Shown here piece by piece: positions 7,236 to 39,200 of a stretch of DNA of 64,000 bases (position 1 is the first letter of the stretch; every line of letters starts with the position of its first letter). The stretch is from Zygnema circumcarinatum SAG 698-1b. Its lineage: Eukaryota > Plantae > Zygnematophyceae. Location of the stretch: NCBI GenBank assembly GCA_037447605.1, contig CM074816.1, positions 1,131,873 to 1,195,872 on the forward strand. Reading direction: 5' to 3'. Below the pieces are notes generated by a model. The model worked only from the letters and a program-made list of their open reading frames with translations, had not been told where the DNA came from and did no database searches. The translations under genes were made by a program, and so were the position numbers.

Positions 7236-10526
<3,291 letters not shown>

Positions 10527-10944
10527 GCGGGTGGGGACTGTTGGACACTGTTCCGCCTTCAGTTGGGAAAATGAAACTGAGAGTGGAAAAAGTGTATTTC
10601 CATGGCATGGTGTGAACACAAGAAGCAATTGTAAGTTGAGGGAACCATGATTAAAATTAGTACGATTCACATTTTTAAGGCACGGCAACACCTCTTTCCT
10701 CTATTCAGGAAAAAAATTCAACCCAGCTCAAGAAAAAGAATCAAAATTAGCAAAGGGTTTCGAACTCAAGAAAAGAATTTTCATTGAAAAAGATGAAGGA
10801 TGAGGGAACATTCCAAACGGTCTAAAGCGGCTGGGTGGCACCCCAAACAAGGCCCAGAACAAGAAAAATCCGGCTGCAAGCCCTTCTCCAAAAAAAGAGC
10901 TGAAAAAGGACAAATGCAGCACTAAGCCCTGAAAGCTAATTCAC

Positions 10945-11350
10945 TTTCCCTCTCCCTCTTCCCCCTCCCCCTCCCCCTCCGCCCCTTCCCCCTCCCCCCT
11001 TCCCCCTTCCCCCTCCCCCTTCCCCCTCCCCTCCTCCCCCTCCCCCCTCCCCCCTTCCCCCTCCCCTCCTCCCCCCTTCCCCCTCCCCCTTCCCCCTTCC
11101 TCCCTCCCTCCTCCCTCCCTCCTCCCCCCCTCCCCCTCCCCCTCCCCCTTCCACCCTCCCCCCTCCCCCTTCCACCCTCCCCCCTCCCCCTCCCCCCTTC
11201 CCCCTCCCCCCCTCCCCCTCCGCCCCTTCCCCCTCCCCCTTCCCCCTTCCCCCTCCCCTCCTCCCCCTCCCCCACATCCCCTCCCCCTCCCTCTCCCGCT
11301 CCCTCTCCCTCTCCCACTCCCTCTCCCACACTTTCCTCCTCCCCTCTCCC
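10945..11350 (+). repeat. Near-pure pyrimidine (CCCCT)n-like tract upstream of the invertase gene
   Basis: Almost only C and T over ~400 bp. Confidence 0.9.
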
Positions 11351-12272
11351 TCTTTCCCACCCAATACACACCTGCTTTCCTCACACCGAGCCCGCCTCGT
11401 ATGCCTCCCCTCCGCGTTAACCCTTGCTCCCAGCGCAGCCCCGACCAGCGTCCGCTCACCTTCCCGCCCTCCCGCCCCTTGGACGGCCGCGCACAACAAA
11501 CAAACAGTTTGCCGTACGCTTCAGTCACCTTTGCCACCGATAATGTACAGCATGTCGGTGCCGTACACTGAATCCATACATACAGTATATCAGGCAGCGG
11601 AGGGTCCCGATCTCCATTATATGTACGGTTACAGTTGTTTTGTACAGTACGGTCATGTTAAAATCCCGCCAATGTCCGTCCGTACATTCAGATGTTCGGG
11701 ACTCGACATGGTCGAATGCGCGCGCGGAACGAGGGATGACGTGGCATGGGTCGCATGGGAGCATGGCCATGGCCACGCCGACACATGGGCATGGAACAAA
11801 CGCACCACGAGCAGTAGTTGGACCTAGCGGTCAGTTCACAGTGCAGTTCAGCTTCCCTTCGGCCTCACCTCCTTTGTGACGCGTTGGTTCCTCGTGGTTC
11901 CCCATGTCGCTCATGTCCATGCCCATGTGATGGCATCGCCATCCATGCGTGAGTTCCACGCCCGCCCATTCATGTCCCTCGCAAGCCCACGCCAGCCCGT
12001 CGAGGGCGAACGAGGTCCCCCTTTGGAGGGTCCGAGGGCGAGGGCGGCCGCGGTTGAGGCGTGCTATCAGGGCGCGTGGTGCCGACGTGGATGCCACGTT
12101 GCGTTCTCAGAAACGCGCCGAGGAGAGGATTTTTATTGAGCCACAAAAAAAAAAAAAACGCTATGTGATCCAATCGCGCGGTGCCACGTGGCAGTGCATA
12201 AGTGTCGGTGCCAGGCTTGACAGCCGATAATTAACAAATAAATAATTTAAAAAATTCCATTAAGTCATGTCT

Positions 12273-12343
12273 GTACCAGTGGTCTAGTGGTAGAATAGCA
12301 CCCTGCCACGGTGCAGACCCGGGTTCGATTCCCGGCTGGTACA
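12273..12343 (+). tRNA. tRNA-Gly (anticodon GCC)
   Basis: GTACCAG-TGGTCTAGTGGTAGAATAGCACCCTGCCACGGTGCAGACCCGGGTTCGATTCCCGG-CTGGTAC-A folds as a cloverleaf with A box and B box (GGTTCGATTCC). It has an AT-rich upstream flank and a T run ~35 nt downstream. Confidence 0.95.
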
Positions 12344-12843
12344 CAGGGGGGGTGGCAACGTCCCGCATAGACATTATTTTTTTTCTTCTGCAAAAATATT
12401 TTTTACTTTGTCATATACAGCCCTGCATGCTCGCCTGGGGTGTCCCCTCGTGCGTAAGGTCATGCCATTGCGAGACGTGAAGGCCAACGTATGATTTCTC
12501 TTCAGCACCTCGGGTTTACGGTCAATTCGGTTCGTTTCTGCTTTACTCTTTCCACTTGGGACTTTCTGAAATTTCTTTGGGGTTGTGCAGTCTGTCTGAA
12601 ATGTTAAGGTCCACGAGGTTCCCTTCAGGGTTTCAGATTCCCGAAATGGATTTTTTTTTGGGGGGTTATCAAAACCGAGACGGGTCCATCAAAACAACTA
12701 AGGCACAAATCCGGTTCAAAAAATTGCCCCAATGTTCCACCTTCACATAAAACCCTTCAACCGACTTTTTCCCAAACATTCATGGTGGCACAAAGAACGA
12801 GATGACGAAGATGAGTTCGAACAAAGTGATGAAGGTCGTAAGC

Positions 12844-14058
12844 TCATGTTTTTCCACCCAACGACTTAATAAACTGGATGGACTGACTAACGGGTGACCT
12901 AACCGCCATGGCTTGATACATGAGCCCCTCCAACTGCGCAGCGGACGGTCTCGCCGTTAACTTCGCAACACATAGAACCTCCTCACCGACATTCCTAAGC
13001 ACCAACCATGGCGTTTCGCTGGGACTCCCCTCCTTCACATATTTGAAAAGGGCACCTTCAAAATTAAAAACTAGCATCACTTTAATGGCGAGAGGGCAAA
13101 ACGAATAACACACTTCAAATGAATTTATAAAGACATTGGTTGCAGGCGACGTCGGAGGGTCCTCGGTCTCCGGAGTTCGCTGCAGTGAATGCCAGTCAGG
13201 GTTCAGCACCACCACAGGCCTTAAACCCGCCTTACTCACAAACTTCTCCATTTCTCCAACTTGAGATTTTTTCGGAGCCACCACAAAAAAGAGGCCAACT
13301 TTCTCCGAGACCTTCTTCACTCCCTCCAGAGTCCCTACAATGCAGTTCTGCAACTTCCCGGAAGCTTCCGAGGCCAGACCCTTATCGCTGCTGCTGCTGC
13401 TACATGCAAGCTCTGCCGCTGCGGAATCCGCAAAATAAACTCCAAAATTTGAAGAATTCATTCCAGAAAATTGCACATTGTGCAGTAAATCACTCACTAG
13501 CTGCACTGCTCCTGCGGGCGAGTCATCTGAAACGGAGAGCTCCAGCATTACTCTCCGAATTACCTTCCCTCTGCCCTTCTTTCCGATTCCTCCGATCACA
13601 TTTGACAAAGCGAACTGCGCCTGCTTTATAGCTTCCTCTCTGCTGCTCGGTAAAGGGTAATCGGAAACCTTAATTTCAGCATCACTGATGATAGAAGGCT
13701 CATCTTTACCTTCACCTGCGGCTTCAGCAAGCGCCCTGCATGACAGCTGTTTTCCATTATCTGCAACCCTAAAATACAGCTGCCGACGCTGCCGCTGCAA
13801 ACAAAAGATATTTCGTCCAACTAAAGACTGAATCTTTCTGTCAACGTCGAGGACCTCCTTTTGAAGATATCTCCCTCTGCACGAGACACCTTTAGCAGCA
13901 GGAGGTCGAAAGGCAGGCGAGATGGAAGAAGGCAGCCATGGATTAGGGTTAAGGTTACGGTGTGAGTTAAAGCGAAGAATATGATGACCTTTACTTGCCC
14001 TCCCGCAGTGCAGCCCGGCTCCCTCCATGGCGCCCTTTAGGGCAGGCACGGCAGCCAT
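12844..14058 (-). CDS. Intronless chloroplast-targeted DUF1995-like protein
   Basis: An uninterrupted ~404-aa ORF from ATG 14058 with a transit-peptide-like N-terminus. Segments YPLPSSREEAIKQA, RPVVVLNPDW, FINSFEVCYSF and RPSAAQLE resemble plant DUF1995 (LPA3-related) proteins. The family call is from memory, not from a search. Confidence 0.7.
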   Translation of the reverse strand: MAAVPALKGAMEGAGLHCGRASKGHHILRFNSHRNLNPNPWLPSSISPAFRPPAAKGVSCRGRYLQKEVLDVDRKIQSLVGRNIFCLQRQRRQLYFRVADNGKQLSCRALAEAAGEGKDEPSIISDAEIKVSDYPLPSSREEAIKQAQFALSNVIGGIGKKGRGKVIRRVMLELSVSDDSPAGAVQLVSDLLHNVQFSGMNSSNFGVYFADSAAAELACSSSSSDKGLASEASGKLQNCIVGTLEGVKKVSEKVGLFFVVAPKKSQVGEMEKFVSKAGLRPVVVLNPDWHSLQRTPETEDPPTSPATNVFINSFEVCYSFCPLAIKVMLVFNFEGALFKYVKEGSPSETPWLVLRNVGEEVLCVAKLTARPSAAQLEGLMYQAMAVRSPVSQSIQFIKSLGGKT

Positions 14059-14251
14059 GGATAGAACAAGCAATTGAAAGGACGCTGTTGCCCCCCTGTT
14101 CCATGAGACAGTTCCGCGTCCATATCCGTATGGTGTACGACTGCCAGCGCCGTACACTGTTGCCGGCCGTCAGCCTGCCGGCCGGTTGACCGTCGGGAGT
14201 TCTGCCTGCCGGCCGCCCTCCCGCCGGCCATCCATTTCAGAAACCCTAAAA

Positions 14252-17200
14252 ATGGCTGCTGCCACGTGGCCCGTAGGCAGCCTTCACACGTGCGGAAAGC
14301 CCTCCACCCAGCAGCAGAGCCGGCCTCTCATCCATGGCTGCCGGGAGAGAGGAAGGCCCCTCCTTCCCCTCTCTCCCTTTGTAAGGAGAGAGAGCCTCCG
14401 TGCGGCTCCGTATGGCGAGAAAGCTTTGGAGGGGCATTCCGTACAGTCGCCATGGCTTCCTGGGAGAAGGAGAAGGTGTCTCTCTGTGAGCGGCAGCGCA
14501 GTGCGAGAGAAGGAGGCGGTGAAGGATGTGACACTGGGCACTTTTTTATTGGAGGCGGAAAATTTGCCCAACAAAATTTTGAAGGGTCCAGAACTGGTGA
14601 AGGTTGTCGAGGGGGTGGAGGAGGCGGTGCGGGAGATTGCTCTAAGGATCGCGAGAGCCGCCATTGATAAGGCAATGGGGGCGATGGAGGGAGGGGGAGA
14701 GGGAGCGGGGGGACGGGACAAGCAGAAGAAGCTCGACGTGGTGGCGGTGAGGCCTCGGAATCCCTACTTCGGGGAGGGAGAGCCGAAAAGGGAAAAGTAA
14801 AATATGGGGAGAGGGAGGGGAGGGGGGGGGTAGGAAGGGGGAGAGGAGAGGGAGGGGAGAGGGCGAGGCGGAGGAGGGAGAGAGGGGAAGAGGGGAAGGG
14901 AGGGGAGAGGACGAGGCAGAGAACGAGGGAGAGAGAGGGGGAAGAGGGGAAGGGAGGGGAGAGGACAAGGCGGAGAAGGAGAGAGAGAGAGGGGAAGAGG
15001 GGAAGGGAGGGGAGAGGACGAGGCGGAGGAGAGAGGGGAGAGGACGAGGCGGAGAAGGAGAGAGAGAGAGGGGAAGAGGGGAAGGGAGGGGAGAGGACGA
15101 GGCGGAGAAGGAGGGAGAGAGAGGGGAAGAAGGGAAGGGAGGGGAGAGGACGAGGCGGAGAAGGAGGGAGAGAGAGGGGAAGTGGGGAAGTGAGGAGAGG
15201 GAGGGGAGAGGAGAGAGAGGGGAAGAGGGGAAGGGAGGAGAGGGAGGGGAGTGGAGAGAGATGGGAAGAGGGGAGGGGAGGAGAGGGAGGGGAGAGGAGA
15301 GAGAGGGGCAGAGGGGAAGGGTATAGAGGGAGGAGAGGGGAGAGGATGAGAAGGAGGGAGAGAGGGGAAGAGGGGAGGGAGGAGAGGGAGGGGAAGGAGA
15401 GAGAGGGGAAGAGGGGAAGGGAGGGAGGAGAGGGGGAGGTGAAGGGAGGGAGGAGAGAGGGGTGGACGGAGGGAGGAGAGAAGGGTGGAAGGGAGGGAGG
15501 AGAGGACGAGGCGAGAGAGGGGAAGTGGGGAAGTGAGGAGAGGGAGGGGAGGACGAGGCGGAGAAGGAGGGAGAGAGAGGGGAAGTGGGGAAGTGAGGAG
15601 AGGGAGGGGAGAGGAGAGAGAGGGGAAGAGGGGAAGGGAGGAGAGGGAGGGGAAGGAGAGAGAGGGGAAGAGGGGAAGGGAGGGGAGGGAGGGGACAAGA
15701 CGATACGGAGGAGGGAGAGAGTAGGGAAGAGGGAAAGGAAGGAGAAGGAGGGGAGGGAGAGGGGAGAGGATGAGAAGGAGGGAGAGAGAGGGGAAGGGAG
15801 AAGAGGGAGGGGAAGGAGGGAGCGGGAGGGAGATGAAACCGTACTTTTTGAAAGAGAAATCTGGATATTCGGGAAAGGAAGAGGCTGATAGGTGGGAAAG
15901 GAGCTTTTAATTTCTAGAACAGGACCCTTGCAAAAAATTCTGGAAACAAACTCATCGATTTTTGGAGACAGAAACTCTTATTCTTCTAAGAGGGTTTAAA
16001 AATGTCTCCGAATAAAATTTTCGAAAGGTTCCCGTAAAGTTTTTATTTTTTTTATTCTTTAATGTTTTGATTTCCTTAACAGTCCTTTGATTCCTTCCTT
16101 TCCTGCATCTAATAAAACTCGTGGTTTGCAGAACGAAATATTTACAAACGCGCTTATCCAATCGCGCCACGTGGCAGTGCTGGCTTCCGAAGAAGACGAC
16201 AACCCCATCTGGATTTCCAACGACGGTCCGTACGTTGTCGTATTCGATCCTTTGGACGGCTCCCGGAACATAGAAGCCTCCATTCCCACGGGGACCATTT
16301 TCGGAATCTATGAGAGAAATTTGGACGCGGACCGTTTAACTGCAACGGAGCGTTCCATGGCGAACGTTTTACGGCCCGGACTGCAGCAGGTGGCGGCGGG
16401 CTACGCCCTCTACTCCTCCGCCGTCATGCTCGTTCTCACCTTTGGAAAGGGAAGCCATGGCTTCACCTTGGACCCCTTGTCGCGGGAGTTTGTTTTGACT
16501 CATCCTGACATTCGCATCCCGCAACGAGGTGAGTGAGACTGTTGCAGACAATTCGCGCCACGATTTAAAAAAAAAGTCGTTTGCATATCCTCATTTTAGC
16601 CCTACCGTTAGGGCTCGCTCTCGCCCTATCTATCTATATACATATGCAAATTTTATGTGTAGGGGTTTTTAGGGCGTGCAATCACCACCCCCGAGGGTAT
16701 TCCTACCCCATCCCCTCCTTCCTAACCGCAACTGAGTTCTTACCAATCAAAATTCTAAATAAAACTAAAATGATTGATCCCTTAATGTCCGATCCTTGAT
16801 TCGTTGACGATCACTTGGGGAAAGGTGGAAGAATAACCCCCGGGGAATAACTCCTTTTTCCCTTTTTTCTTATTGGGTGCCCTTTGAAATATATTTGCTT
16901 ATAGTGTATTTTTGCTGTTTCTGACTGTGTAATTTACAAGTTTCTTGTATTTTTGTTTGGGGGGCGGTAGGGCAAATTTATTCTGTGAATGACGCCCGGT
17001 ATTTCGATTGGCCCGAGGGCCTCCGATCCTATATCGATACTGTGCGGCAAGGCAAGGGCCAATATCCGAAACAGTACTCCGCAAGGTACATCTGCTCCCT
17101 CGTGGCCGACTTCCACCGGACCCTCCTTTACGGCGGAATTGCCATGAATCCGAGGGACCATTTGCGGCTGCTCTATGAGGCGAATCCGCTCAGTTTTGTT

Positions 17201-17371
17201 GCGGAACAGGCCGGCGGGAAAGGGACGGACGGAATCCGTAGAATTTTGGGCATAGAACCCACCGCTGTTCACCAACGGTTGCCGCTCTTTTTGGGGAGTC
17301 CGGAGGATATCGATGAGCTTGTGAGCTATGGCGACGTGCAGCAAATAAAGAATCCTGGCTACGAAGTTTGA
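14252..17371 (+). CDS. Chloroplastic fructose-1,6-bisphosphatase, cpFBPaseII type, 3 exons
   Basis: Exons 14252-14746, 16132-16528 and 16971-17371. Motifs: RDKQKKLDVVANE, ASEEDD, FDPLDGSRNIEASIPTGTIFGIY, GQIYSVNDARYFDWPEGLR, YSARYICSLVADFHRTLLYGG, and C-terminal NPGYEV as in Arabidopsis At5g64380-type proteins. Confidence 0.95.
14801..15835 (+). repeat. About 1-kb polypurine (GA-rich) tract with internal repeated units in cpFBPaseII intron 1
   Basis: The unit AGAGAGGGGAAGAGGGGAAGGGAGGGGAGAGGACGAGGCGGAGAAGGAG recurs several times. Confidence 0.9.
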
Positions 17372-24983: not shown

Positions 24984-25961
24984 ATGTCGATTTGGGAGAG
25001 CCGTCTACAGAATGCAGACAAATCAACGAGTGCTGATGTCATAACCACAGAAAGAGACAGCATGATGATGTCAGCTGGAACCCCAGCTGTCATTACCCCC
25101 ATCATGAACTCCCCGATCTATGAAGCCCCTCCGTTGGCAGCAACGGAAGCCCGTGAAACAGATCCCATCCTTCACACACACGGCCTCCGTCGTAGGCGAC
25201 GGAACACAGAAACCCTTGTCCGCTATTACCTCTACAATTTCTTCCTCATTTTCTTTGCGGTTTTCGGAATAGTGATTCTCGTGTATCTTGGATGGCCTCA
25301 GTCTCCAAAAATCCGCATAGGATCGACGACTTTGAAGGGAGTTTCCGTCAATACGGAGGAAATAGAAGGGAAGCTGCTGCCGCGTGTGCAACTGGATATC
25401 CGCTTAGTTTTGCTGTTCTATGTGCAAAATCCAAACTGGGCCGGATTTTGGTACAAGGAAATCACGGCGGACGTGGAGTACAGGAACAAACTGATAGGCG
25501 AAGTCCGCACGCTGAAGGCGGGGAGGGTCGCTCCATGGAGCGAAAGAAGCGTTGAAGCGGAACTGGACCTGAAGGGCATGGAACTGCTCGGAGATGGGCC
25601 TGCCCTTCTTGCTGACGTGGCGGAAGGGAAGGTGGATCTGAGAGTGACTACTTTGGTGGTTGGGGCGGTAGATATCGCCTTGTGGAGTGTCGATGCTAAG
25701 GTGGGTCCCACTCTCTCTCCCTCTCTCCCTCTCAGCGCTCCTGCCCGCTCTCGCTCAATTCTCGCTCTCTTTCTTTCCCTCTCCATCGCTCTCCCCTCGT
25801 CTCTCTCCCCCACTCTCTCTCTCTCTCCCTCTCTCTCTCTCCCTCTCTCCCTCTCTCCCTCTCTCCCTCTCTCCCTCTCTCCCTCCAGCGCTCCTGCCCG
25901 CTCTCGCTCAATTCTCGCTCTCTTTCTTTCCCTCTCCATCGCTCTCCCCTCGTCTCTCTCC

Positions 25962-25996
<35 letters not shown>

Positions 25997-26331
25997 CCTC
26001 CTTCCTCCCTCTTCTCTCGCCCACGGTCTCTCTCTCTTGCCCTGTACTTCATCCCCTTGCCCTCCCTCTCCAGTCTCCCTCACCCCCTCATTTTTCTCTT
26101 TCTACCTTCTCTCCGTCACCGTCACATCATGTTTCTAAGCCTCTTGTGCTTATCGGATTTGTGGACCTTTCGGCAGATTTAAGTTTTTTTTTTTTTGTTT
26201 ACTTATTGAGTCTAAGTTTGGTTTTGTGTTTCTTTTGCAATGCGCAGCTCCAAGTGGTCTGCGACTTGGGGGTGGACCCCCTCGAAAATGTCCTTCTTCA
26301 AAAAAGCTGCAATTCTAGCCTCCTCAATTAG
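24984..26331 (+). CDS. NDR1/HIN1-like (LEA_2 domain) membrane protein, 2 coding exons
   Basis: Exons 24984-25700 and 26248-26331. A hydrophobic anchor (YYLYNFFLIFFAVFGIVILVYLGWPQSP) is followed by LEA_2-type VQNPNWAGFWY..ITADVEYRNKLIG and a terminal VVCDLGVDP...QKSC. The exact start codon is uncertain. Confidence 0.82.
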
Positions 26332-27315
26332 GAGGCACTTCTAAAGTGCCATTTACTTAATTTGCATATTTAAAGTTTGAACCTGGGAACTCAACCCGGT
26401 GGACTTCAAGCAATAGGCCTTGAACCCGAATGTTCCTAAACCTTCAATTTTGGGTCTTTTTTTTTCTAAGTAGTTACCAGGCGCATAGGCTTATTGATGT
26501 GTATTATTGGATTTAGGGGTTTCGGGACTGGTAATTTTCTCTGTATGATGAGGTCTGAACGATTTGGGCACTTTCATATGTGCAATTTTTGGGAAGTCGT
26601 TGTGTACAGTGTAACGGTATCCTGTTCAACTATATCTCCCCATTCGTAAAACTGGAAGTAGACTTACTGCATGTGGCCAAGCCTTGATTTGGCAGTTCCT
26701 ATAATATAGTACATTCACCTTATGACCTTCTTTGTTTCTTCTAAGACGTATTCGCCATCAAATACTCAGTGAAATGGAAAGAACAGGCAAAGCAAAAATG
26801 AAGCAAGATGACGAAATCAGAAGCCAGAAACCAGAAGATGTGATTTTGATACGCTTTCAAACCCTTGTACTTTTTAAGCAAAGTCAAGCCGCCGGATTTT
26901 TCGAATTTCTTCCCGCCGAGAAAACTCGCGGGCGTTGCATGCCGCCGGCGCTTCCAAAAGCATGCACGGATAAGTTTTTTACAGCTGCCCGCACCAATGC
27001 CGAGGCCCGAAAACTGTACGGTCATTCACGGTCTGCGAATATTTTTTTAGCGCAGACCTTCCATCGGGTTCTAAAGCACTCGCCTTGAACCCGACATTCC
27101 CATTTTAGACCCCCAATCTCATTGAACCTTTGCATGCCCTGAACCCTTCTCACAGCGACCAGAACGAATATCTGAATTGAGATGTTCTGAAATTCTTGTG
27201 GATCACGAATCCTCCAACACTGAATTCTGTGTCCCTGCACCCTAATTTCGCAACTTTTGAATCTCAGCCCTAAAATCCGAATTCTAATGTCCAACTTTTG
27301 AAAAAATCAACTCTT

Positions 27316-27660
27316 AAACCCCAAACTCTGATCCCGGAAACTGGTTATGGACCCATGAATCCTGAGCACTAAGCCCAGAGCCCTCACCCGAAACCCTCAA
27401 CCTTGAAACCTGAGCACGAAGTCTAAACCCTGAGCCCTCAACCCTAAACCCTGAATCCTGAACCCTCCCTAAACCCCGAACCCTAAACCCTGAGCACTGA
27501 AGCCTAAACCCTGAGTCCTGAACTCTCAACCCTGAACCCTAAATCCTTAACTCTGAACCCTAAACTCTGAACCCTTAACCTTAAACCCTGAACCCTAAAC
27601 CCTGAGCCCTGAATCCTGAACCCTGAACCCTAAACCCTGAATCCTGAACCCTACACCCTG
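27316..27660 (-). repeat. Degenerate (CCCTAAA/CCCTGAA)n telomere-like array directly upstream of the CapA-like gene
   Basis: Tandem AAACCCT/GAACCCT variants; a short further run lies at 27852-27887 in CapA intron 1. Confidence 0.85.
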
Positions 27661-27714
27661 AAGCCTGCAACGAAGTGGAGAGGCTTCCTGCGCTCCGCAC
27701 TGCCACGTGTGAGC

Positions 27715-30700
27715 ATGGAGGGAGAGAGCAGTGGCGAGAGGAAGCTTCCCTGGAAGCTTCTGCTGCTGGGGGACTGCATGCTGGGCCGGCTGGTGGATCA
27801 ACTCTTCCCTGACGGCAACCCTGAACCCTACGAGCGCAACCTGGTCCCGCCCTAAACCCTAAACCCTAAACGCTAAACCCTAAACCCTCCTCTCATTGAT
27901 TTTTAGTAGAGGAATAGAAAGCATTGGTTGCAGCTTTTTTTTCTCAACTCAATTTCCTAACGGCTACTCCTTTGCCCTCCTTTCTTGGCCCCGCCCGCTC
28001 CCTACTCTGTCCGTCTCCCTCTCTCCTCTCTTCTCTACCATCCTCCTCTCTTCCACTCTCTCGCTCCCTATTCTCTCCCCTCTCACTCCCTCCTCCCTTC
28101 TCCCTGCCTCCCTCTTCCTCTCTCTCCCTTGTCCCCTCTCTGTCCCTCTCCCTCTCTCTCCCCTTTCAACTTCCCACTTCCTCTCGTTCTTACCCTCTCT
28201 CCCCCCGTCCTTTTGTGCCCCCCCGAGATCTCGCGCACCCTCTTCCCCCCTCCTTCTTTCCCCCCTCCCACTTTCTCCCTCTCCTCTCCTCATCCGGCTT
28301 TCCTTCTTCCTCTCTCCGCACCCCACTCTGCCTTCCTCCCTCTCCCCATCCCTCCCACTCTTCCCCCCTCTCCCTCCTCCCCCATCTCTCTCGCCTTCCT
28401 CCCTCTCTCCCACCTCCCGTCGTCCCTCCCACTCTCCCCCATTCTCTCCCCCCTCCCAACCTCCCTGTCTCCTATCTCCCTCTCTCTCCCGTTCCCTTCT
28501 CCACCTCTCCCCCCTCCACCCCTCCCTCTCTCCCCCCTCCCCATCTCCCTCTCTCCCCTCCCTCCCCCCCTTTTTCTCTCCCCTCCCTCCCCCCCTCCCT
28601 CCCTCCCTCCCCCCCAGGCCCTCTCCCTCCTCTCCCGCGACCCCTCCTCCTCCCTCCGCCTCTCTTCGGTCGGTCCGGCGGCGTACATTTGGGGCGACGC
28701 TCTGCCGATCTTGCGCTCGGCTGACGTCCGCATGGCGAATCTGGAGACGAGCGTGACGTCACATTCCGTGAAGTGGCCCGGGCAGGCCTTCAACTTCCGC
28801 ATGCATCCCCGCCACGTGGCAGCGCTCAAGCTGGCGGAGTAGACCTCTCCTGCCCCTTCCTTTAACTTTTTGCTAATCTTGGAGTGATTTTACATGTTCA
28901 GTTAAATTAGTTTGGAAGGAAAAAGGGACTGTCTTTTTTGCTTTATGATGCTCCACACATGTAATTCCCTCTCTCTCTCTCCGCCTTCTCCTCCCACTTC
29001 TAATCTCTTATCACTTTCCACTCTCCCAACCCCCTACCCACCCCCAAATTTTTTTTTTTTTTTTTTTTTGGGTGGGGGGAGGGGTGGGGGGGGGGGGCTC
29101 AGAATTAATTTTTGTTCCCTTGCCAACAATCACATTCTCGATTTCCAGCACCAAGGCCTACGTGACACGTGTCACACTCTCGATAAGGCGGGCATCGCCC
29201 ACGCGGGATGCGGAGAAACACTCGAAGAAGCCGCGGCCCCCGCCTTTGTGGAGGTTCGAACCGGGGACCTGGGCGTTGCAAACCGAGGGTTTAGGGTTCT
29301 GAAATGCGATGAAATTATAAGGCTTTCTTCTCGCTTTGGGTTGTTTGATCAAAGAAAACCGCCTTCTTAAAAAGTAAAAGAATACCAAATAAAAAAAAAA
29401 AAGGACAAAAGACATAGTGATGGTGTGTTTAGACTTCAGTGTTCAGACAATCTGCTGACGTCATAGGCGATGACTATTACCCTATATGTCAGTTTTGCTG
29501 ACGTCACGGTACTGTCTTCGTGACAGAAAAACGGTCTCCGCATCGCGTGTTTTGCCGCGGCGGATCATTTCGAGTATTGGGCGATCCACCGGACCCGCCC
29601 GGGGATCCACTTCATTGATCCGGACAGGTGGATCCGCAAGGAATAGACCCTCCATGTTTTCAATGGACAGTTTTGCTTTTTTTTAATTTTCAAAGACTAT
29701 TTCATGAAGAGTAGTATCTGTATAGTTTTTCTAAAGCGCTGGCTTTTTAAATTTCTTGAGGGACTCACCTTTTTTCTTAAGATGGAAAATGAAGGTACAC
29801 GTCAGCTGATTTGGAGCGAATTTCTGCGAAAGTGAAGGCGGCCAAGGGAGAGGAAGGGGCCGATTTGGCAATTTTTTCCGTACATTGGGGCCCAAACTAT
29901 AGCTGGGAACCGAGGTACGTCTTTCTTAACAAAAAATAAAATAATGGATAATAGATATTGCCTAAGAGATTGAACTGTCTACTAAGACATGGAGCACGCA
30001 GCTCAGAAATCCTCAATTTTTTTTTTTCTTTTTTTTTTTTTTTTGTTGGATGCAGTGAGGGCATACAGCGGTTGGCAAGAGACCTCGTCGACCGCTGCGG
30101 GATCGACGCCGTGCATGGAACATCCTCTCACCACGTGCAAGGTCAAAACCCTAAAACCCTACAACCGAAACCTTAAACCCTAAATCCTGCACCCAGCGCT
30201 TCATAAGCTTAAATAAGAAATCCGAAAAGTCCTCGGAATCATGCCACCCCCAAAGCTCTTTGCTGTCACCTGACTTGGGTTGACTTGGGTTGACTTAGGT
30301 TGACTTATATTGACTTCTGTAGGCATTTTTGCTTTTGGACTTTTGTGATTGTTTAGGGATTGCGATTTACAGAGGTGCTCCCATCCTGTACGGATGCGGC
30401 GACTTCATCGACGACTACGCCGTGACGGCGGAGTACAGAAACGACCTCGGATTCGCGTACATGTTGAATTATGACAAAATCGCGAAAAGAATTACACATT
30501 TGGACCTCTATCCGACATGCATTCGGAGGCTCTCCGTGTCCACAAAACTGCTCGAAGAGGACCGAAGGTTCGTCCCCCTTCACATGTGCGGCCGTTCAAC
30601 GGAATCCGTGCTGAGCTGCTAAGAAGGTTATATGCTTGCACGGAGGGCATTCACATGCAAAACAAAACATAGATAGTAAATAAATAAATCAAAATATCAA

Positions 30701-30878
30701 TAAGGAATTGCGGCGAAAGTGGATGTTTGTTTGTTTGTTTGTTTGTTTTGTTTTTAATTTTCTGTGCAGGTGGCTTTATGAGAAGATGAAATGGCTCTTC
30801 GGTCGCTTCAAAACGAAGGTCGAAGAGGCCGAGAACGGGCAGACTTTACTGATCCCCGTGAGCCCACATGGAACCTGA
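27715..30878 (+). CDS. CapA / PGA_cap-family metallophosphoesterase-like protein, 8 exons
   Basis: Exons 27715-~27843 (weak donor), 28618-28838, 29103-29253, 29527-29627, 29795-29914, 30056-30141, 30357-30567 and 30770-30878 splice in frame. CapA motifs: LLLGDCMLGRLVDQLFP, IWGD, MANLETSVT, WPGQAFNFRMHP, SLANNHILDF, AGCGETLEEA, SVHWGPNYSW, HGTSSHHVQG, ILYGCGDFIDDY, YRNDLG. Confidence 0.88.
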
Positions 30879-31137
30879 AACGGCGGGAAGTTGCACTGAA
30901 CTGAACGGCGGTTCCATGCGCTACCGCTGGTTGGCGCACAGCGTAACAGTTCGAAGCCGGACCTTTTAGGGTTTGTTTGTAGAGTTGTGCACAAATCGAG
31001 TCAGGCGTGGAAGGAGAGGTAGGCGCACTACCTAGAGAAGTGGTGGGTGTAAATAGTTAGGGTTTAGGGTTTTGGATTTAGGGTTTAGGGTTCAGGGAAA
31101 GGGTTGAACTGGGGCTCCTTGCTGGCCAGTTCCGTCA

Positions 31138-33289: not shown

Positions 33290-36200
33290 ATGGCGGCCGC
33301 CAGCGCGCCCAGCGCTCTCAGATCTGCGATCGTCTCGGCGCGTTCCGAGCCCGCCTCTGTGGCCGGCTTCAGCGCGGGAAGGAGGGCGGAGGTGATGCCT
33401 GGCGCCTCCCTACATTGCTATCGCCCGCCCTTATTTCTGTTTACTTTTGATTGATTCAGGAGATGATGCGTTTGAAGTTTGGCAGGGATGTGTATTGCTC
33501 GCCTTCGGCTGAGGGCTTGACGGATCTGTTCGCTGCAGCCTGACACTGAGCTCCAGCTCTAGTTCCAGTTCCAGCTCCAGCTCCAGTTCCAGCTCTAGTT
33601 CCAGCTGCAGCTTCAATTCTTCAGGTTGATTTGATTTATAGGCTGATATTGGACAGTGTTCGGTTTGCAGGTTGCCGGCTCGAAGGTGTCGGGCTTTTTC
33701 GGCAGCAATGAGCTCAGGCTTTACTCTGTTTCTGCAGTCCGCACTCCTCAGCGCAAGGTAATCGGTCAGTCTCTCTTACAGGTCGCAATGTGCACTTGCT
33801 GCCTCTCTTTTATTTATCTTTTGAATGATTTGCAGTCATCACGTCGCGGCTTTTGCCGCCATTTTTGGAGAGGGATGATGCAGGATTGAGTGCTGATTTT
33901 TTTTTTGGTCCCTTTGCAATGCAGAAAGTGTGACGGAAGTCAGTCGCATGTGATTCCTCAACTTTTGGCGTGATGTCTATTTGCTCCCTCGCTGAAGTGC
34001 AGTGTTCTGAAGGGTGATAGAGATTAAGGTCCTATAATTCAGCTTAACTAATTCAGTGGATTGCGTGAGAGAGTGTGAAATCGTTGCTAAAAGGGCACGC
34101 ATTTGAATGTCATTCAGACTGAACTCTTACTTCAGAACGCGGTGCATTGCACTCGTTGGGCAATTTATACCTTTTCTTCATCTGAAATTGAGCATTGCAA
34201 ATGGTCCGAGTTCAGTACCATGGTCAGTATGGCATTGATTTGACTTTATTAAATCGGGCGTCATTTGAGCGGAGTTCAGAATCGTGTCATGCAGTTATGG
34301 CAGGCATGCCACGATCTCTTGGAATACTACAGTCTTTACTTGTGGCTAATTTTGTAGGCAGTGTTTGGATTTCCTTTGGAGTTGTCAGTCAAGACTGTGT
34401 CTGTTTAAAAATGACGTTTTTAATGTTCGATTGCTGAAACTACTTCTGCGGTACAACAGAAAGCAAAATTTGAGCTTCCTGAGTGGGCATGGGTTTTCTG
34501 CTTCAACTTATATATGTTGTGTTTTACGACAAGTTTTGGCATTAGTATGACTTATTGGACCGCGTACTGGGAGTCCGTTATACTTTTTTGTGCTTGGTGC
34601 TTGTTGATCTCTGACCTCTCGTATCAATATCTGAAGCAGTAGCTGATTCATGGTGGGCTGAAAATGGAAATCTGAAGCTTATCAGTTAATGGGAGTACTT
34701 CCGGTGGTTTCCTTCTCTGCATGTGATGATGGGCATACTTTGCCTTTTGCTCCTTGTTTGCACCTGAGGATTAATCAATATATTTGAGTCGGGCTATATT
34801 CCAACTCCAACGTTTCGACGATTCAAGTCTGTAGTGTTGGCTTCTGCTGTGATAGTAGTCTCGCTCTCTTGTTCTTCTTATGGAGCAAAAATCATTTTTT
34901 TGCTTGATTTTTAGGAAGAACGGTACAGGCAGAATTCGATCTGATCTTAACGAGAAACACTTAAAGAGAGACAGATTTCCAGCAGTTATTTTGAATTCTT
35001 TAATTAGATTTTTTTGCTTTATCAATTGTCTGGCAGCATGCCCTTCCATGAGTCATATCAGTTTCATTCGATTACAGCTTTCAATATTATTTCGTTCCTT
35101 TCGCATTAATGACATTGCAAGTTCAGAAAAGCTAGAGAGCAACTGTCTTTCAGTGAGCAAATTTGTGGGTCAACTCTCTGTTAAGCTGCTGTAGTTGATC
35201 TTGAAATATCCCACCTGTAATTCACGGTGTATTCACTGAGGTATTCATGGAACCAGAATGCTGAAATTTAGCTTGGCTTGTACCTTTACTGAACTTTCGG
35301 AATCCATGTTTCTACTGATTTCACCACCCAAAAGCCCTGATTTGATTGGCAGCCGTTTCAAGATTTTCTAGACCAGCTGTATGAAAGTGAAATTGGGTAT
35401 TAACCATGTGATTATAGAGTATTTTTTAATACTTAAAATGATTATGTGCTGACGTATGTTGACCTGGATTTTTACCTGCTATACCAGTTTCTTGTTTACT
35501 GGATTCGGCCGCAGTCTGTGTAGACGCGTGTTTCCTGTAGTGAAATGATCGATATTTCCTGACTAATTTCAACTTGAACTGACCCTGCCTTCGATTTAGT
35601 CAATTCTAGTCAATGATTCATGCACGTATCGGCTGCCACTCTGTGCGGATGCACCACACAGTTCCTAATGTGTCTGACGAATTTACATTTCCATATCTAA
35701 CTCATCTCTGTTACTTCAAACCTCGACTCTGTATATACTGATTCTACCCTGCATCGTGTTTCCTTTTGTTTGAATGCACCACAGGCTGGGGCCTACGTGG
35801 CAAAGGCGGAGCTGCAGCAGAGGGCGGAGTACATTTGGGCGGACGGCCTGGAGGGGCAGAAGGGCATCCGCTTCAACGAGATGCGCTCAAAGACCAAAGT
35901 CATCCCCAAGCCCATCGATGTGGGGGGGAAATTCCCTCAGTGGAGTTTCGACGGCTCAAGGTGCGGTAGTGCAGAGTTTTTTGAAACTCCTCGCTCCCTC
36001 CCATCCCTCTCCCCTTCCTATCTCCCTTCCCTCTCCCCTTCCTATCTCCCTTCCCTCACTCCTTCCTCCTCCTCCCTCCATCCTCCATCCTCCCTACTTT
36101 CTCCCCCCTCCCTCCTACACCTTTGTTTAGGGAAGACGGGCTGCTAACGGGTTGATTGCTCAGAAGTACTGTTTTCTCGTCCAGCACATGCTTTCTCAAC

Positions 36201-39200
36201 ATTAAATCCTTACTTCTACTGTTGTTGCGGAAGCATGGGGAATGATCATGGTGCGGGAAAGCACATTTTGAAGAACCCTAGAATCCCTCATAGCCAAATT
36301 GACACCAGTATACACAAAGTCAAGCAATTAGAACATGTGCCCTTATTTCCGTTACAGTCTATATGATGCTTAGATTGTTCCAGCAGTGCGTGTCCGTTTC
36401 TCCCTTCCTCTTCCACTTCCTCCTTATAGCTCTGCCTTTTCCTGTTTCAGCGTCACCTTCCAACCCGCATGCACTGCTTATATTCTTTTTACAAGTAGCC
36501 CTTCCTCACCATCCCCCTTGCGCTCCCACTTTTCTAAATTTACATCATACTACTCCCCGTACTCCTCTCACTCCCACTCTCTCTCACACTCTCTCTCTCT
36601 CTATGTCTCCCTCTCTCTCACTCCCTCTCTATGTCTCCCTCTCTCTCCCTCCCTCCCCCTCCCCTCCCCTCTCGGCCGCCTCTTTCTGGACTTCCCTCCC
36701 TTCCTATCTTCCTTCCTACCTTCCCACCTCTTCCTCCTGACCTCCTCCCACTGTCCGTCGCCACCCTGTCTCCTTCCTTCCTCCCTGCCGTCTCCCTACT
36801 GTCTCCGCCCCGTCTCACTCCCATCCCCCCCTCTCATCCCCTCCCGTCTCCCTCCCTCCCTCTCTCCCGCCCTCCCTCCCTCCCTGCAGCACTGGACAGG
36901 CCGAGGGCCGGTTCTCCGACTGCATCCTGAACCCCGTGTTCACCTGCCCCGACCCCATCCGCGGCGGCAACAACGTCCTTGTTCTCTGCGAGGTCCTGAA
37001 CCCTGACTCGACCCCCCACGAGACCAACACTCGCCGGCTCATTGCGGACCTTCTCTCGCCGGAAGTGCTCGCGGAGGAGACTCTCTTCGGGTTCGAGCAG
37101 GAGTACACAATGTTCAGCAAGAAGGGGCAGGTGTACGGATGGCCCGAGGCGGGATACCCGCACCCACAGGTAAAAAGGTTGGGGGATAGTGGTTGGTTGG
37201 GCTTGGGTGGGAGATGGGGATGGGGTTTTAATGAATGGGTTGGTTTTCTGTTTAAGGATTTGGATATGGTTTTTTTGATGGTGGTGTCTGTGGCTTTTTT
37301 TTCTGATTGGCAGGGGCCCTTCTACTGCGGGGTTGGTTTGGAGTCTGTGTATGGACGCCCTTTGGTTGAAGCACACATGGATGCCTGCATTAAGGTACTG
37401 TGGCTGCGCTCTCTTTCTCCCTCTCCCTCCCTCCCTCGCGCTCTCTCTCTCTCTCTCCCTCTCTCTGAGTCTCCCCCTCACTACCCCCAACTTTCCCCCT
37501 CCCTCCCCTTTTTCATGTCCCTTCCACGCAGGAATGTGAGTCCGACTTTGTAGACATTCGTCACTGGTTCATGATCTTCTTCTTACGTAAAACACCTCTG
37601 AAAATTTGACGTTGTTCTCTTGTGAATAAGATAATTTGTATAGTTTTGCCAGGTCATGTCAGACAGCACAGTTCTTTTTTTAGGTGAAAGGACATGGGAC
37701 TCTCAGTCTTTGTTAGGAAGACGAATGTTGGTTAGGAAAGGTGAAGATTTTGCAATGTATTACCCAGTTTTTTAAGGCACTAGAACAAAAAAGATTTCCT
37801 GCAGAAAATATTTCTGCGAGGTGAATTTCATAGCTTTAGCACACCTCGTTCCAGCCACAAATTGATATATTTGTCGTCGTTATGTGATACTTAGTAGTTC
37901 ATTTTATGTCACCTCAATATATGTCGAACTATTCTCATACAAGTTATGAGCCACATTAGTTATCCGGAAGGACAATATCGCGTGCACTCTCCTTTCTACC
38001 TTATCAATTTTTCGGGATAGGATGCAAGTCATACCCGCATCTGATGTCAGAAGGGAGCATTTGAGTGGTGCAGGCGAACCTGAAGATCAGTGGAGTGAAC
38101 GCGGAGGTGATGCCCGGCCAATGGGAGTTCCAAATTGGCCCGGCCGGCCCCCTCGAAGTGGGCGACCATGTCATGATTGCGCGATGGCTGCTGCACAGGT
38201 TAGCCTCCCTCTCTCTCTCTCTCTCCCACTCTCTCCCTCTCTCTCGCTTTCTCGCTCTCTCTCTCTCTATCTCTCTCTTTCCCTCTCTCCCACTCCACAA
38301 GTTTTGACTGTTGAAAGTTGCAATCAAGCTGAGATCGTCTCTTGGAATGCAGGTTGGGTGAGGATTTCGGCATCATTTCCACTTTCGAGCCTAAGCCGAT
38401 GGAGGGCGACTGGAACGGAACTGGAGCACACACTAACTACTCCACCAAGTCCATGAGGGAAGACGGCGGAATTAAGGTGCACACCAACCCTCTCTTCTCC
38501 TCTTCCTCTCCCCCCTACCCCTCTACCTGAACCCCCGTTTCTCCCTCCTTCGCCATCACCTCTCCCTCCTTTCCCTCTCTTCTCTGCCTCCCTCTCCTAC
38601 GCCCTTCCCGTTTCCTTTCCCTCCCTCGTGCCTATCGCCAGGGGTTGATGACCATTAGTGCTAACTGAAAGACATGGAAAGGAAGTGATTCTGAAAACGG
38701 TTGACTGGCGTAGTTGGGTTGTTCATCGTTTCCTAGTCTAGTCTAGTCGTAAGCCTGCCAGCTTGAGTACTGGCATGGGTTGACCTTCTCATCAGTCTGA
38801 TTTGTCATATTATGGATTCTTCGTGCTGGACAGGCCATTGAAGCTGCCATTGAGAAGTTGTCCAAGAAGCACCAGGAGCACATTTCAGTGTACGGAATTG
38901 GAAATGAGAAGAGACTGACGGGCAAGCACGAGACTGCCAGCATCGACACCTTCAAGTGAGTAGAGAACTTCTCCCTCTCTCTCTACAACTTCCTTCCTCT
39001 TCAGTTGTCTTGCAGTATGCATGCCTGCATTTTTTCTTCTTAGAAGCGGCGAGCATTCAACATAAACTTCAAGTGAGTAATTGTAATTGGCCTATCCCAT
39101 CTGCTCTCACATTCTGTAGATCGTGAATGTGTGCTTTTTAAAGCCTTAGCAGAGGTGCTGCCCTTCACTAAACCATTGAACCCCTGTCACAAAGAGTGAA

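Follow-up and report, generated by a model that had tools for sequence, protein, structure and literature searches.

A multi-exon gene for a stand-alone PGA_cap protein in the streptophyte alga Zygnema circumcarinatum, probably inherited within the green lineage and likely encoding an MslH-like one-metal enzyme

Two members of the PGA_cap family have been studied, PgsA and MslH. PgsA (CapA) is part of the PgsBCA (CapBCA) system of Bacillus, it is membrane-anchored, and its gene lies in an operon with those of PgsB and PgsC. It also affects the stereochemistry of the product, because the poly-gamma-glutamate (PGA) of B. subtilis had a D/L ratio of 5/95 when pgsBC was present without pgsA, versus 75/25 with pgsA (PMC6029982). 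MslH is a Streptomyces enzyme that epimerizes the C-terminal Trp of a lasso peptide (PDB entries 8GQ9, 8GQB, and 8ITG). It has a calcineurin-like fold and is calcium-dependent, a single metal is bound by Glu44, Asn87, His259, and His261, and two dyads are formed by His88/Asp91 and His295/Asp11 (PMC10406935). Both studied members bear on D/L stereochemistry (PMC10406935, PMC6029982). That a gene of the PgsA family can work in a eukaryote is exemplified by cnidarian PgsAA, which is tied to PGA for nematocysts and is reported to have been acquired from bacteria, according to the statement made in PMC5375639 with reference to Denker et al. 2008. Here, a PGA_cap gene of the streptophyte alga Zygnema circumcarinatum SAG 698-1b is described. 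It is located on the plus strand at positions 27715-30878 of the window, i.e., the whole stretch of 64,000 nucleotides that was analyzed (assembly GCA_037447605.1, contig CM074816.1, positions 1,131,873 to 1,195,872). An initial annotation, made from the sequence, had regarded it as a fully intronised CapA gene and as a candidate for an old horizontal transfer.

The gene was read by hand from the sequence and consists of eight exons (E1-E8) and seven introns (I1-I7). The exons add up to 1128 nt in one frame, i.e., 375 codons plus a stop codon (TGA at 30876-30878), and all seven introns have GT-AG borders. The phases of I1 to I7 are 0, 2, 0, 2, 2, 1, and 2, and their lengths are 774, 264, 273, 167, 141, 215, and 202 nt, respectively. 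The exon pieces were scanned separately, and the Pfam family PGA_cap (PF09587) was found to be colinear over them, with profile positions 24-74 in E2 (45.5 bits), 78-127 in E3 (58.8 bits), and 173-206 in E5 (31.1 bits), and with weaker matches in E6 (211-234, 23.3 bits) and E7 (236-255, 17.4 bits). E2, E3, and E5 each exceed the gathering score of 27 bits on their own, which places the protein in the family. In addition, the eight pieces tile ten relatives end to end, with one free column per split codon in the alignment, and the variable E1/E2 linker has 34 residues, equal to that of Chara. Thus, the eight in-frame exons of the initial annotation were borne out by exon reading, by the Pfam matches, and by the alignment with the relatives. 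Judged by its sequence, the streptophyte alga has an intact nuclear gene at this locus, which encodes a stand-alone PGA_cap protein of about 375 residues from the CapA/PgsA/MslH branch with its calcineurin-like fold. The best joint explanation of all data, which we regard as rather likely, is that this gene encodes a one-metal PGA_cap enzyme, that it has been inherited vertically in a green-lineage clade, and that the enzyme is likely an MslH-like epimerase.

The motif order GD / NLE / ANNH / H-W-G / S-x-HH / G-x-F was found along E1 to E7. E1 (27715-27843) contains the start codon and GD..MLGRLVDQ and has no signal or anchor segment, E2 (28618-28838) encodes NLET and WP..FNFRMHP and ends in phase 2, and E3 (29103-29253) encodes ANNHILD. 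The clade-invariant motif ADH..W is located in E4 (29527-29627), HWGPNYSWEP in E5 (29795-29914), GTSSHHVQ in E6 (30056-30141), and YGCGDFIDDY..YRND together with the C-terminal sheet in E7 (30357-30567), while E8 (30770-30878) encodes the C-terminal helix (W..L) and ends with the stop codon. All motifs that had been named at the outset were thus present, both those of the metallophosphoesterase type (GD, NLET, ANNH, HWG, SSHH, and GDF) and those of the subtype (GRLVDQ, WP..FNFRMHP, HWGPNY, and YGCGDFIDDY), and the stand-alone subtype indeed occurs also in prokaryotes and fungi.

Among 39 proteins of the eukaryote clade described below, 65 columns show a conservation of at least 90%, and the Zygnema protein agrees with 62 of them. 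One further column is a Gly encoded by a split codon, and two columns differ, i.e., the Asn of MHPxN is replaced by His, and the Glu of G-V-E just after I6, which is invariant in 39/39 relatives, is replaced by Ala. These two changes could point to a relic, decaying or silent, as could the weak first donor (CTG/GTCCCG at 27844), the fact that the gene model rests on homology and not on RNA, and the absence of the exact protein from the protein collections searched (best E3 identity 68%). The first donor is the sole GT between the conserved LVDQLF and an in-frame TAA, and the splice junctions are supported by homology. Five sequencing runs, of unspecified kind, contained a share of 0.49-0.60 of the words sampled from the stretch. 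However, all eight exons are open, 14 of 14 splice sites are canonical, and 62 of 64 scorable conserved positions as well as every catalytic residue are kept. The contrast in composition is also intact, with a GC content at third codon positions (GC3) of 0.71 in the exons and a GC content of 0.30-0.45 in introns 2-7, the CT-rich intron 1 being excepted. A relic is, therefore, very improbable.

Searches and tree placements were made with single exon pieces, and the orthologues of Chara braunii and Closterium were used as proxies for the full-length Zygnema protein. An exhaustive HMMER search with exon 3 yielded 1685 matches, which were then re-ranked for each exon. Two proteins matched best over the full length, i.e., Chara braunii GBG61181.1, whose 819-residue model has PGA_cap at residues 451-726, and Closterium CAI5470791.1; their identity was 54-57% over the aligned exon parts. 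Both are already public as unnamed CapA-domain proteins, and the Zygnema protein is a further member of this known family. Like fungal proteins named 'polyglutamate biosynthesis protein' and a homologue from Balamuthia, these uncharacterised eukaryotic proteins resemble it in the subtype motifs, in having no anchor, and in a length of about 340-420 residues; the identity is about 40-45% to the fungal and amoebozoan members, versus the value given above for the algal members. Two word searches, for which the Closterium protein and an unnamed close relative served as queries, extended the list, which already contained a chytrid, by five Closterium strains, Picocystis salinarum, Balamuthia mandrillaris, the rotifer Didymodactylos, and many Ascomycota. 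Many short, intronless, transcript-like contigs from metagenomes and Logan assemblies were also among the relatives. No land plant was present in the top 120 hits of either of the two word searches, and this absence counts, because a Chara-like land-plant orthologue would rank near the top. The initial remark that the subtype is not known from angiosperms is in line with these hit lists. No rhodophyte member was found among the relatives, and no match of about 57% identity to Closterium, as expected for the Zygnema protein, was seen except Closterium itself. The subtype motifs were detected in 303 bacterial or archaeal species from many phyla (one genome per species). The best bacterial or archaeal identity was 33-41%, versus 43-48% between Chara and other proteins of the eukaryote clade.

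Phylogenetic analyses placed the gene within the green lineage. In a FastTree tree with 254 rows, Chara and Closterium adjoined a group with Picocystis, in a clade that holds every named eukaryote except Chrysoparadoxa. A quick IQ-TREE analysis of 77 rows (LG+C20 with posterior mean site frequencies, PMSF) gave values in the Shimodaira-Hasegawa-like approximate likelihood ratio test (SH-aLRT) of 94 for the eukaryote clade, 95 for the streptophytes, 100 for the Picocystis group, 90 for the fungi with the chytrid basal, and 89 for a group of Balamuthia and the rotifer; the order of the subclades was not settled. With LG+F+G4 and 1000 ultrafast bootstrap replicates (UFBoot), the streptophytes and the Picocystis group, which here comprised Picocystis and six unnamed proteins, were joined with 87.8/94 (SH-aLRT/UFBoot), and the fungi had 97.9/99. 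Under LG+C20 PMSF, when the 11 green-lineage rows were constrained to form one group, the tree was 13.95 log-likelihood units above the free quick tree (p-AU 0.72 in the approximately unbiased test). E2, E3, and E5 were placed singly, and each was sister to Closterium in the streptophyte clade, with a support of 99, 95, and 98, respectively, for the streptophytes plus the piece. On the contigs of two unnamed proteins of the Picocystis group, LHC-like, TPS, and PrmA genes follow in a conserved order, and for one contig the TPS has 75-78% identity with those of Micractinium, Chlorella, and Auxenochlorella, so that the clade of the Picocystis group is chlorophyte.

The proteins of annotated relatives were mapped back onto their genomic loci to obtain intron positions. 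Two Closterium genes contain four introns each, and introns 2, 3, and 4 of these genes match I2 (28839-29102, phase 2), I3 (29254-29526, phase 0), and I4 (29628-29794, phase 2) of Zygnema by column as well as by phase. The other Closterium intron has phase 0 and lies within a few columns of I1 (27844-28617, phase 0), in the variable linker. I5 to I7 are private to the Zygnema gene and are its three extra introns compared with Closterium. Columns and phases thus indicate that the gene had at least three introns in the ancestor that the two algae share. The initial annotation had assumed that seven introns were gained after a transfer; this does not hold for all of them, as I2 to I4 are common to Closterium. 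The Balamuthia gene has seven introns and the gene of the chytrid Quaeritorhiza has six, with one common position directly after HH[IV]Q in phase 0, which may go back to an old intron or to insertion into a proto-splice site more than once. It is one nucleotide off I6 (phase 1), and this near-match was given no weight because the site is a typical proto-splice site.

Because introns are common to Closterium, because the protein groups with Chara, and because this clade groups with chlorophytes, the gene has probably been passed on vertically from the common ancestor of the green algae or from an earlier one, with losses in land plants and many chlorophytes, as far as the sequences tell. For the whole eukaryote group a very old bacterial origin is possible; it may be ancestral in eukaryotes or go back to one very old bacterial transfer.

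The alternative is that a bacterial CapA gene moved into the streptophyte lineage after the chlorophyte split and gained introns later. It would fit with a family that is mainly prokaryotic, as reflected by the 303 species mentioned above, with the land plants missing from the hit lists, with the Chara domain that has no intron, and with the nearest outgroup of the eukaryote sequences, which consists of eight bacterial and archaeal rows (Chloroflexota, a Burkholderiales metagenome-assembled genome, Bdellovibrionota, and a nanoarchaeal metagenome-assembled genome; 93.6/85 for the eukaryotes plus this group with LG+F+G4). However, the streptophytes group with chlorophytes (UFBoot 94, and the constrained tree scores better), the next sequences beyond the green clade are from other eukaryotes and not from bacteria, the best bacterial identity is below that of Chara to the proteins of the eukaryote clade, and the codon composition is host-like. 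This scenario is, therefore, very unlikely. A recent transfer from a bacterium to the alga is not indicated either, because the nearest relatives are algal, GC3 is host-like, and of the seven introns three are as in Closterium. The old transfer into the green lineage was thus not supported as it had been proposed: the nearest relatives are Chara and Closterium, followed by chlorophytes, and the maximum likelihood phylogeny that had been suggested as a check put the green-lineage clade inside a group of eukaryote sequences. The vertically inherited eukaryotic clade that had been named as a counter-argument was found for chlorophytes and streptophyte algae, while rhodophyte and land-plant members were not found.

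The next question is which reaction the protein might catalyze. When a profile of the clade was compared with solved structures, MslH was the sole match (E 9e-21), and it was also the nearest structure to an AlphaFold model of the Chara orthologue (mean predicted local distance difference test 78.8, predicted template modelling score 0.84), with a TM-score of 0.65-0.69. The next structural neighbours were phosphatases of the YmdB type, 5'-nucleotidases, and purple acid phosphatases. MslH and the Zygnema protein share the PGA_cap family and the calcineurin-like fold, although the identity is only about 18%. Seven of the eight catalytic and metal-binding residues of MslH are kept, two of them by motif order. 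Asn87, His88, and Asp91 are aligned with ANNHILD of E3, His259 with the His of HWG in E5, and His295 with the first His of the HH in E6, and Asp11 and Glu44 were assigned by motif order. Of the metal ligands, Asn87 and His259 are thus kept by alignment and Glu44 by motif order only, and the site of His261 is absent, because it lies inside an insert that is specific for MslH and not present in the clade. The two catalytic dyads are represented by ANNHILD and by the first His of SSHH, which are aligned, together with the Asp of GD, which was again assigned by motif order, and the four residues are invariant in 39 relatives.

The motif set of two-metal calcineurin-like phosphoesterases (D-x-H, G-D-x-x-D, G-N-H-[DE], H, and G-H-x-H) was not matched. 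Throughout the clade the His of motif I is missing, as the sequence is GD-x-M and not D-x-H, motif II is NLE and not GD, and motif V is G-T-S-S-H-H. The missing His of motif I argues against a two-metal site. The protein shares the alpha-beta-beta-alpha core fold with YmdB-type and other two-metal metallophosphoesterases, but it lacks the motif I His and the motif II GD, and the second metal site would not be formed. The eukaryote clade has invariant motifs of its own, i.e., ADH, GDFIDDY, and YRND, which MslH does not have, and the substrate, therefore, differs from that of MslH. No lasso-peptide cluster is present in the window, and no genes for ribosomally synthesised and post-translationally modified peptides were seen, neither in the neighbourhood, where a LEA_2, a DUF1995, and a glutamine synthetase gene are located, nor at the loci of relatives that were examined. 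A hydrophobic segment is missing, as the Kyte-Doolittle mean, taken over 19 residues, peaks at 0.92, and the protein begins 17 residues before the GD motif and the first strand.

Based on sequence and model, the following mechanism can be proposed. The enzyme would be soluble, probably located in the cytosol, and would bind one metal via Glu (NLET), Asn (ANNH), and His (HWG). Acid/base chemistry would be performed by two His/Asp pairs, one within ANNHILD and the other consisting of the Asp of GD and the first His of SSHH. The substrate may be a carboxylate-bearing peptide or a gamma-glutamyl compound, on which the enzyme would act at the carboxyl-terminal residue, and an MslH-like epimerisation would be the most likely reaction. 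The enzyme would work without PgsB and PgsC, and thus PGA would not be made. Our best guess is, therefore, an acid/base enzyme that is soluble, binds one metal, and would most likely catalyze an epimerisation, with a hydrolase as the main rival.

The hydrolase would have the same ancestry and would act as a phosphoesterase or as an amidase on gamma-glutamyl or peptide bonds. Most enzymes with the calcineurin fold hydrolyse, hydrolytic enzymes follow directly after MslH in the structural comparison, His261 of MslH is not kept, and the clade-invariant motifs that are absent from MslH mean that the substrate is certainly different. On the other hand, the His of motif I that belongs to a two-metal site is replaced in GD-x-M, motif II is NLE and not GD, as in the one-metal enzyme MslH (PMC10406935), and the only two studied members of the family bear on D/L stereochemistry (PMC10406935, PMC6029982). 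Hydrolytic chemistry is, therefore, a serious but less probable possibility than epimerisation. The epimerase reading can be extended to the eukaryotic stand-alone CapA-like proteins in general, which would then be a so far undescribed cytosolic one-metal epimerase family that introduces D-residues at the carboxyl terminus of small peptides or gamma-glutamyl compounds, is old in eukaryotes, and was lost as land plants arose. In this broad form the proposal is speculative and rather unlikely to hold.

The family name and the homology to PgsA/CapA also suggest a role in PGA synthesis, with the Zygnema protein as a PgsA-like part of a synthetase, PgsB and PgsC encoded elsewhere in the genome, and gamma-PGA made by the alga. 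A precedent would be the PGA of cnidarians, which in the account of PMC5375639, citing Denker et al. 2008, depends on the bacteria-acquired PgsAA; no cnidarian sequence is among the relatives listed here. The Pfam family and the motif order are the same in PgsA and in the algal protein, but the N-terminal membrane anchor of PgsA/CapA was not found in the latter, and the operon partners are also missing: no Pfam family of the PgsB or PgsC type was present among the called genes beside the orthologues at six eukaryote loci (two species of Closterium, chlorophyte contigs, Balamuthia, and the chytrid). Likewise, none of the genes next to 42 bacterial members of the subtype was recurrent, these being the loci at which crude calling of open reading frames recognised the central gene (42 of 80). 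As it had been stated initially, no pgsB or pgsC partner was seen in the window, which was inspected without a targeted search for PgsB and PgsC. Since both an anchor and neighbouring PgsB/PgsC genes are missing, a PGA role is unlikely, and the synthetase version with distant partner genes is extremely so. The extracellular-polymer role considered in the initial annotation is unlikely for the same reasons, i.e., because a signal or anchor segment is missing and because the relatives examined have no neighbouring partner genes.

Several observations weigh against the combined reading of a vertically inherited, intact gene for an MslH-like one-metal epimerase. In addition to the homology-based gene model, the Ala at the otherwise invariant Glu position, and the missing counterpart of His261, no paper on members of the eukaryotic clade was found in the literature searched, and the eukaryotic distribution is patchy. 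The Chara domain is encoded in a single 1398-nt exon, and the copies of both Chara and the chlorophytes have no introns in the domain. The Zygnema protein was placed exon by exon only, and E7, when placed alone, fell with the unnamed proteins P0162/P0163 and not with the streptophytes, which was read as fragment noise. Monophyly of all eukaryotes had only 47.6/49 with LG+F+G4, so that it is supported in a model-dependent manner. Chrysoparadoxa australica (ochrophyte, P0137) was located outside of the eukaryote clade, on a long branch by a large bacterial group, and its CapA-like protein may have been acquired separately or represent a contaminant. An entry of EukProt labelled Diacronema (Pavlova) lutheri belongs to the cluster (90% identity) that is represented by P0197; the latter is the nearest neighbour of the MMETSP protein from Picocystis salinarum, and the entry reflects either a contaminated culture data set or gene movement between a haptophyte and a green alga. 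Eukaryote-to-eukaryote transfer or contamination thus occurs somewhere in the family.

If vertical inheritance is correct, an attractive but incorrect case of a bacterial gene entering the plant lineage is removed, and common intron positions together with a chlorophyte sister clade offer a way to tell inheritance from transfer in this case. The enzyme family, with its inferred function, is conserved in streptophyte algae, chlorophytes, fungi, and an amoebozoan, and it was not found in land plants. Should the algal and fungal members indeed be epimerases, this would suggest that these organisms contain metabolites with D-amino acids that are not yet known.

The gene is surrounded by open reading frames of the plant type, i.e., a LEA_2 gene at 24984-26138 and, on the minus strand, a DUF1995 gene at 12844-14157. 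Its GC3 lies within the range of its neighbours (0.50-0.86), and a foreign composition was not seen. The CapA-like gene sits in ordinary host nuclear DNA. About 2.4 kb downstream, at about 33290-38530 on the plus strand, a plant-type glutamine synthetase is encoded, which has an Ala/Ser-rich N-terminal extension of the plastid type. This adjacency is not kept in Closterium, where adaptin and endonuclease V are the neighbours.

In Chara braunii (BFEA01000017.1, positions 8001-17283 of the locus), the annotated 819-residue protein resembles a fusion of two upstream exons, located beyond a 6.5 kb intron, with an intronless CapA-like open reading frame, and compared with Zygnema 440 unrelated N-terminal residues are fused to the domain. 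The open reading frame has its own Met just before the domain, and a Ty3 element is located 2 kb downstream. The Chara gene is possibly a processed copy. Two Chlorellales-like metagenome contigs exhibit the same gene order around an intronless gene, i.e., HAD hydrolase, LHC-like, CapA-like, and PrmA-type methyltransferase. The LHC-like open reading frames were considered as a taxon marker of the chlorophyte contigs and were dropped, because only a 20-residue chlorophyll-binding motif matched PDB entries.

The last observations concern repeats in and around the Zygnema gene. I1 begins with a telomere-like repeat, and most of it is filled by a CT-rich low-complexity tract of about 600 nt (27990-28615), which gives rise to spurious long open reading frames on both strands. 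Within I2, a run of about 22 T directly precedes a G-rich run (29050-29098). Degenerate telomere-like heptamers (CCCTAAA/CCCTGAA and the complement) are present in both orientations at 27314-27690, 29283-29297, 30143-30185, and 31055-31100; they flank the gene and recur in introns 1 (27850-27888), 3, and 6 as well as just beyond the 3' end.

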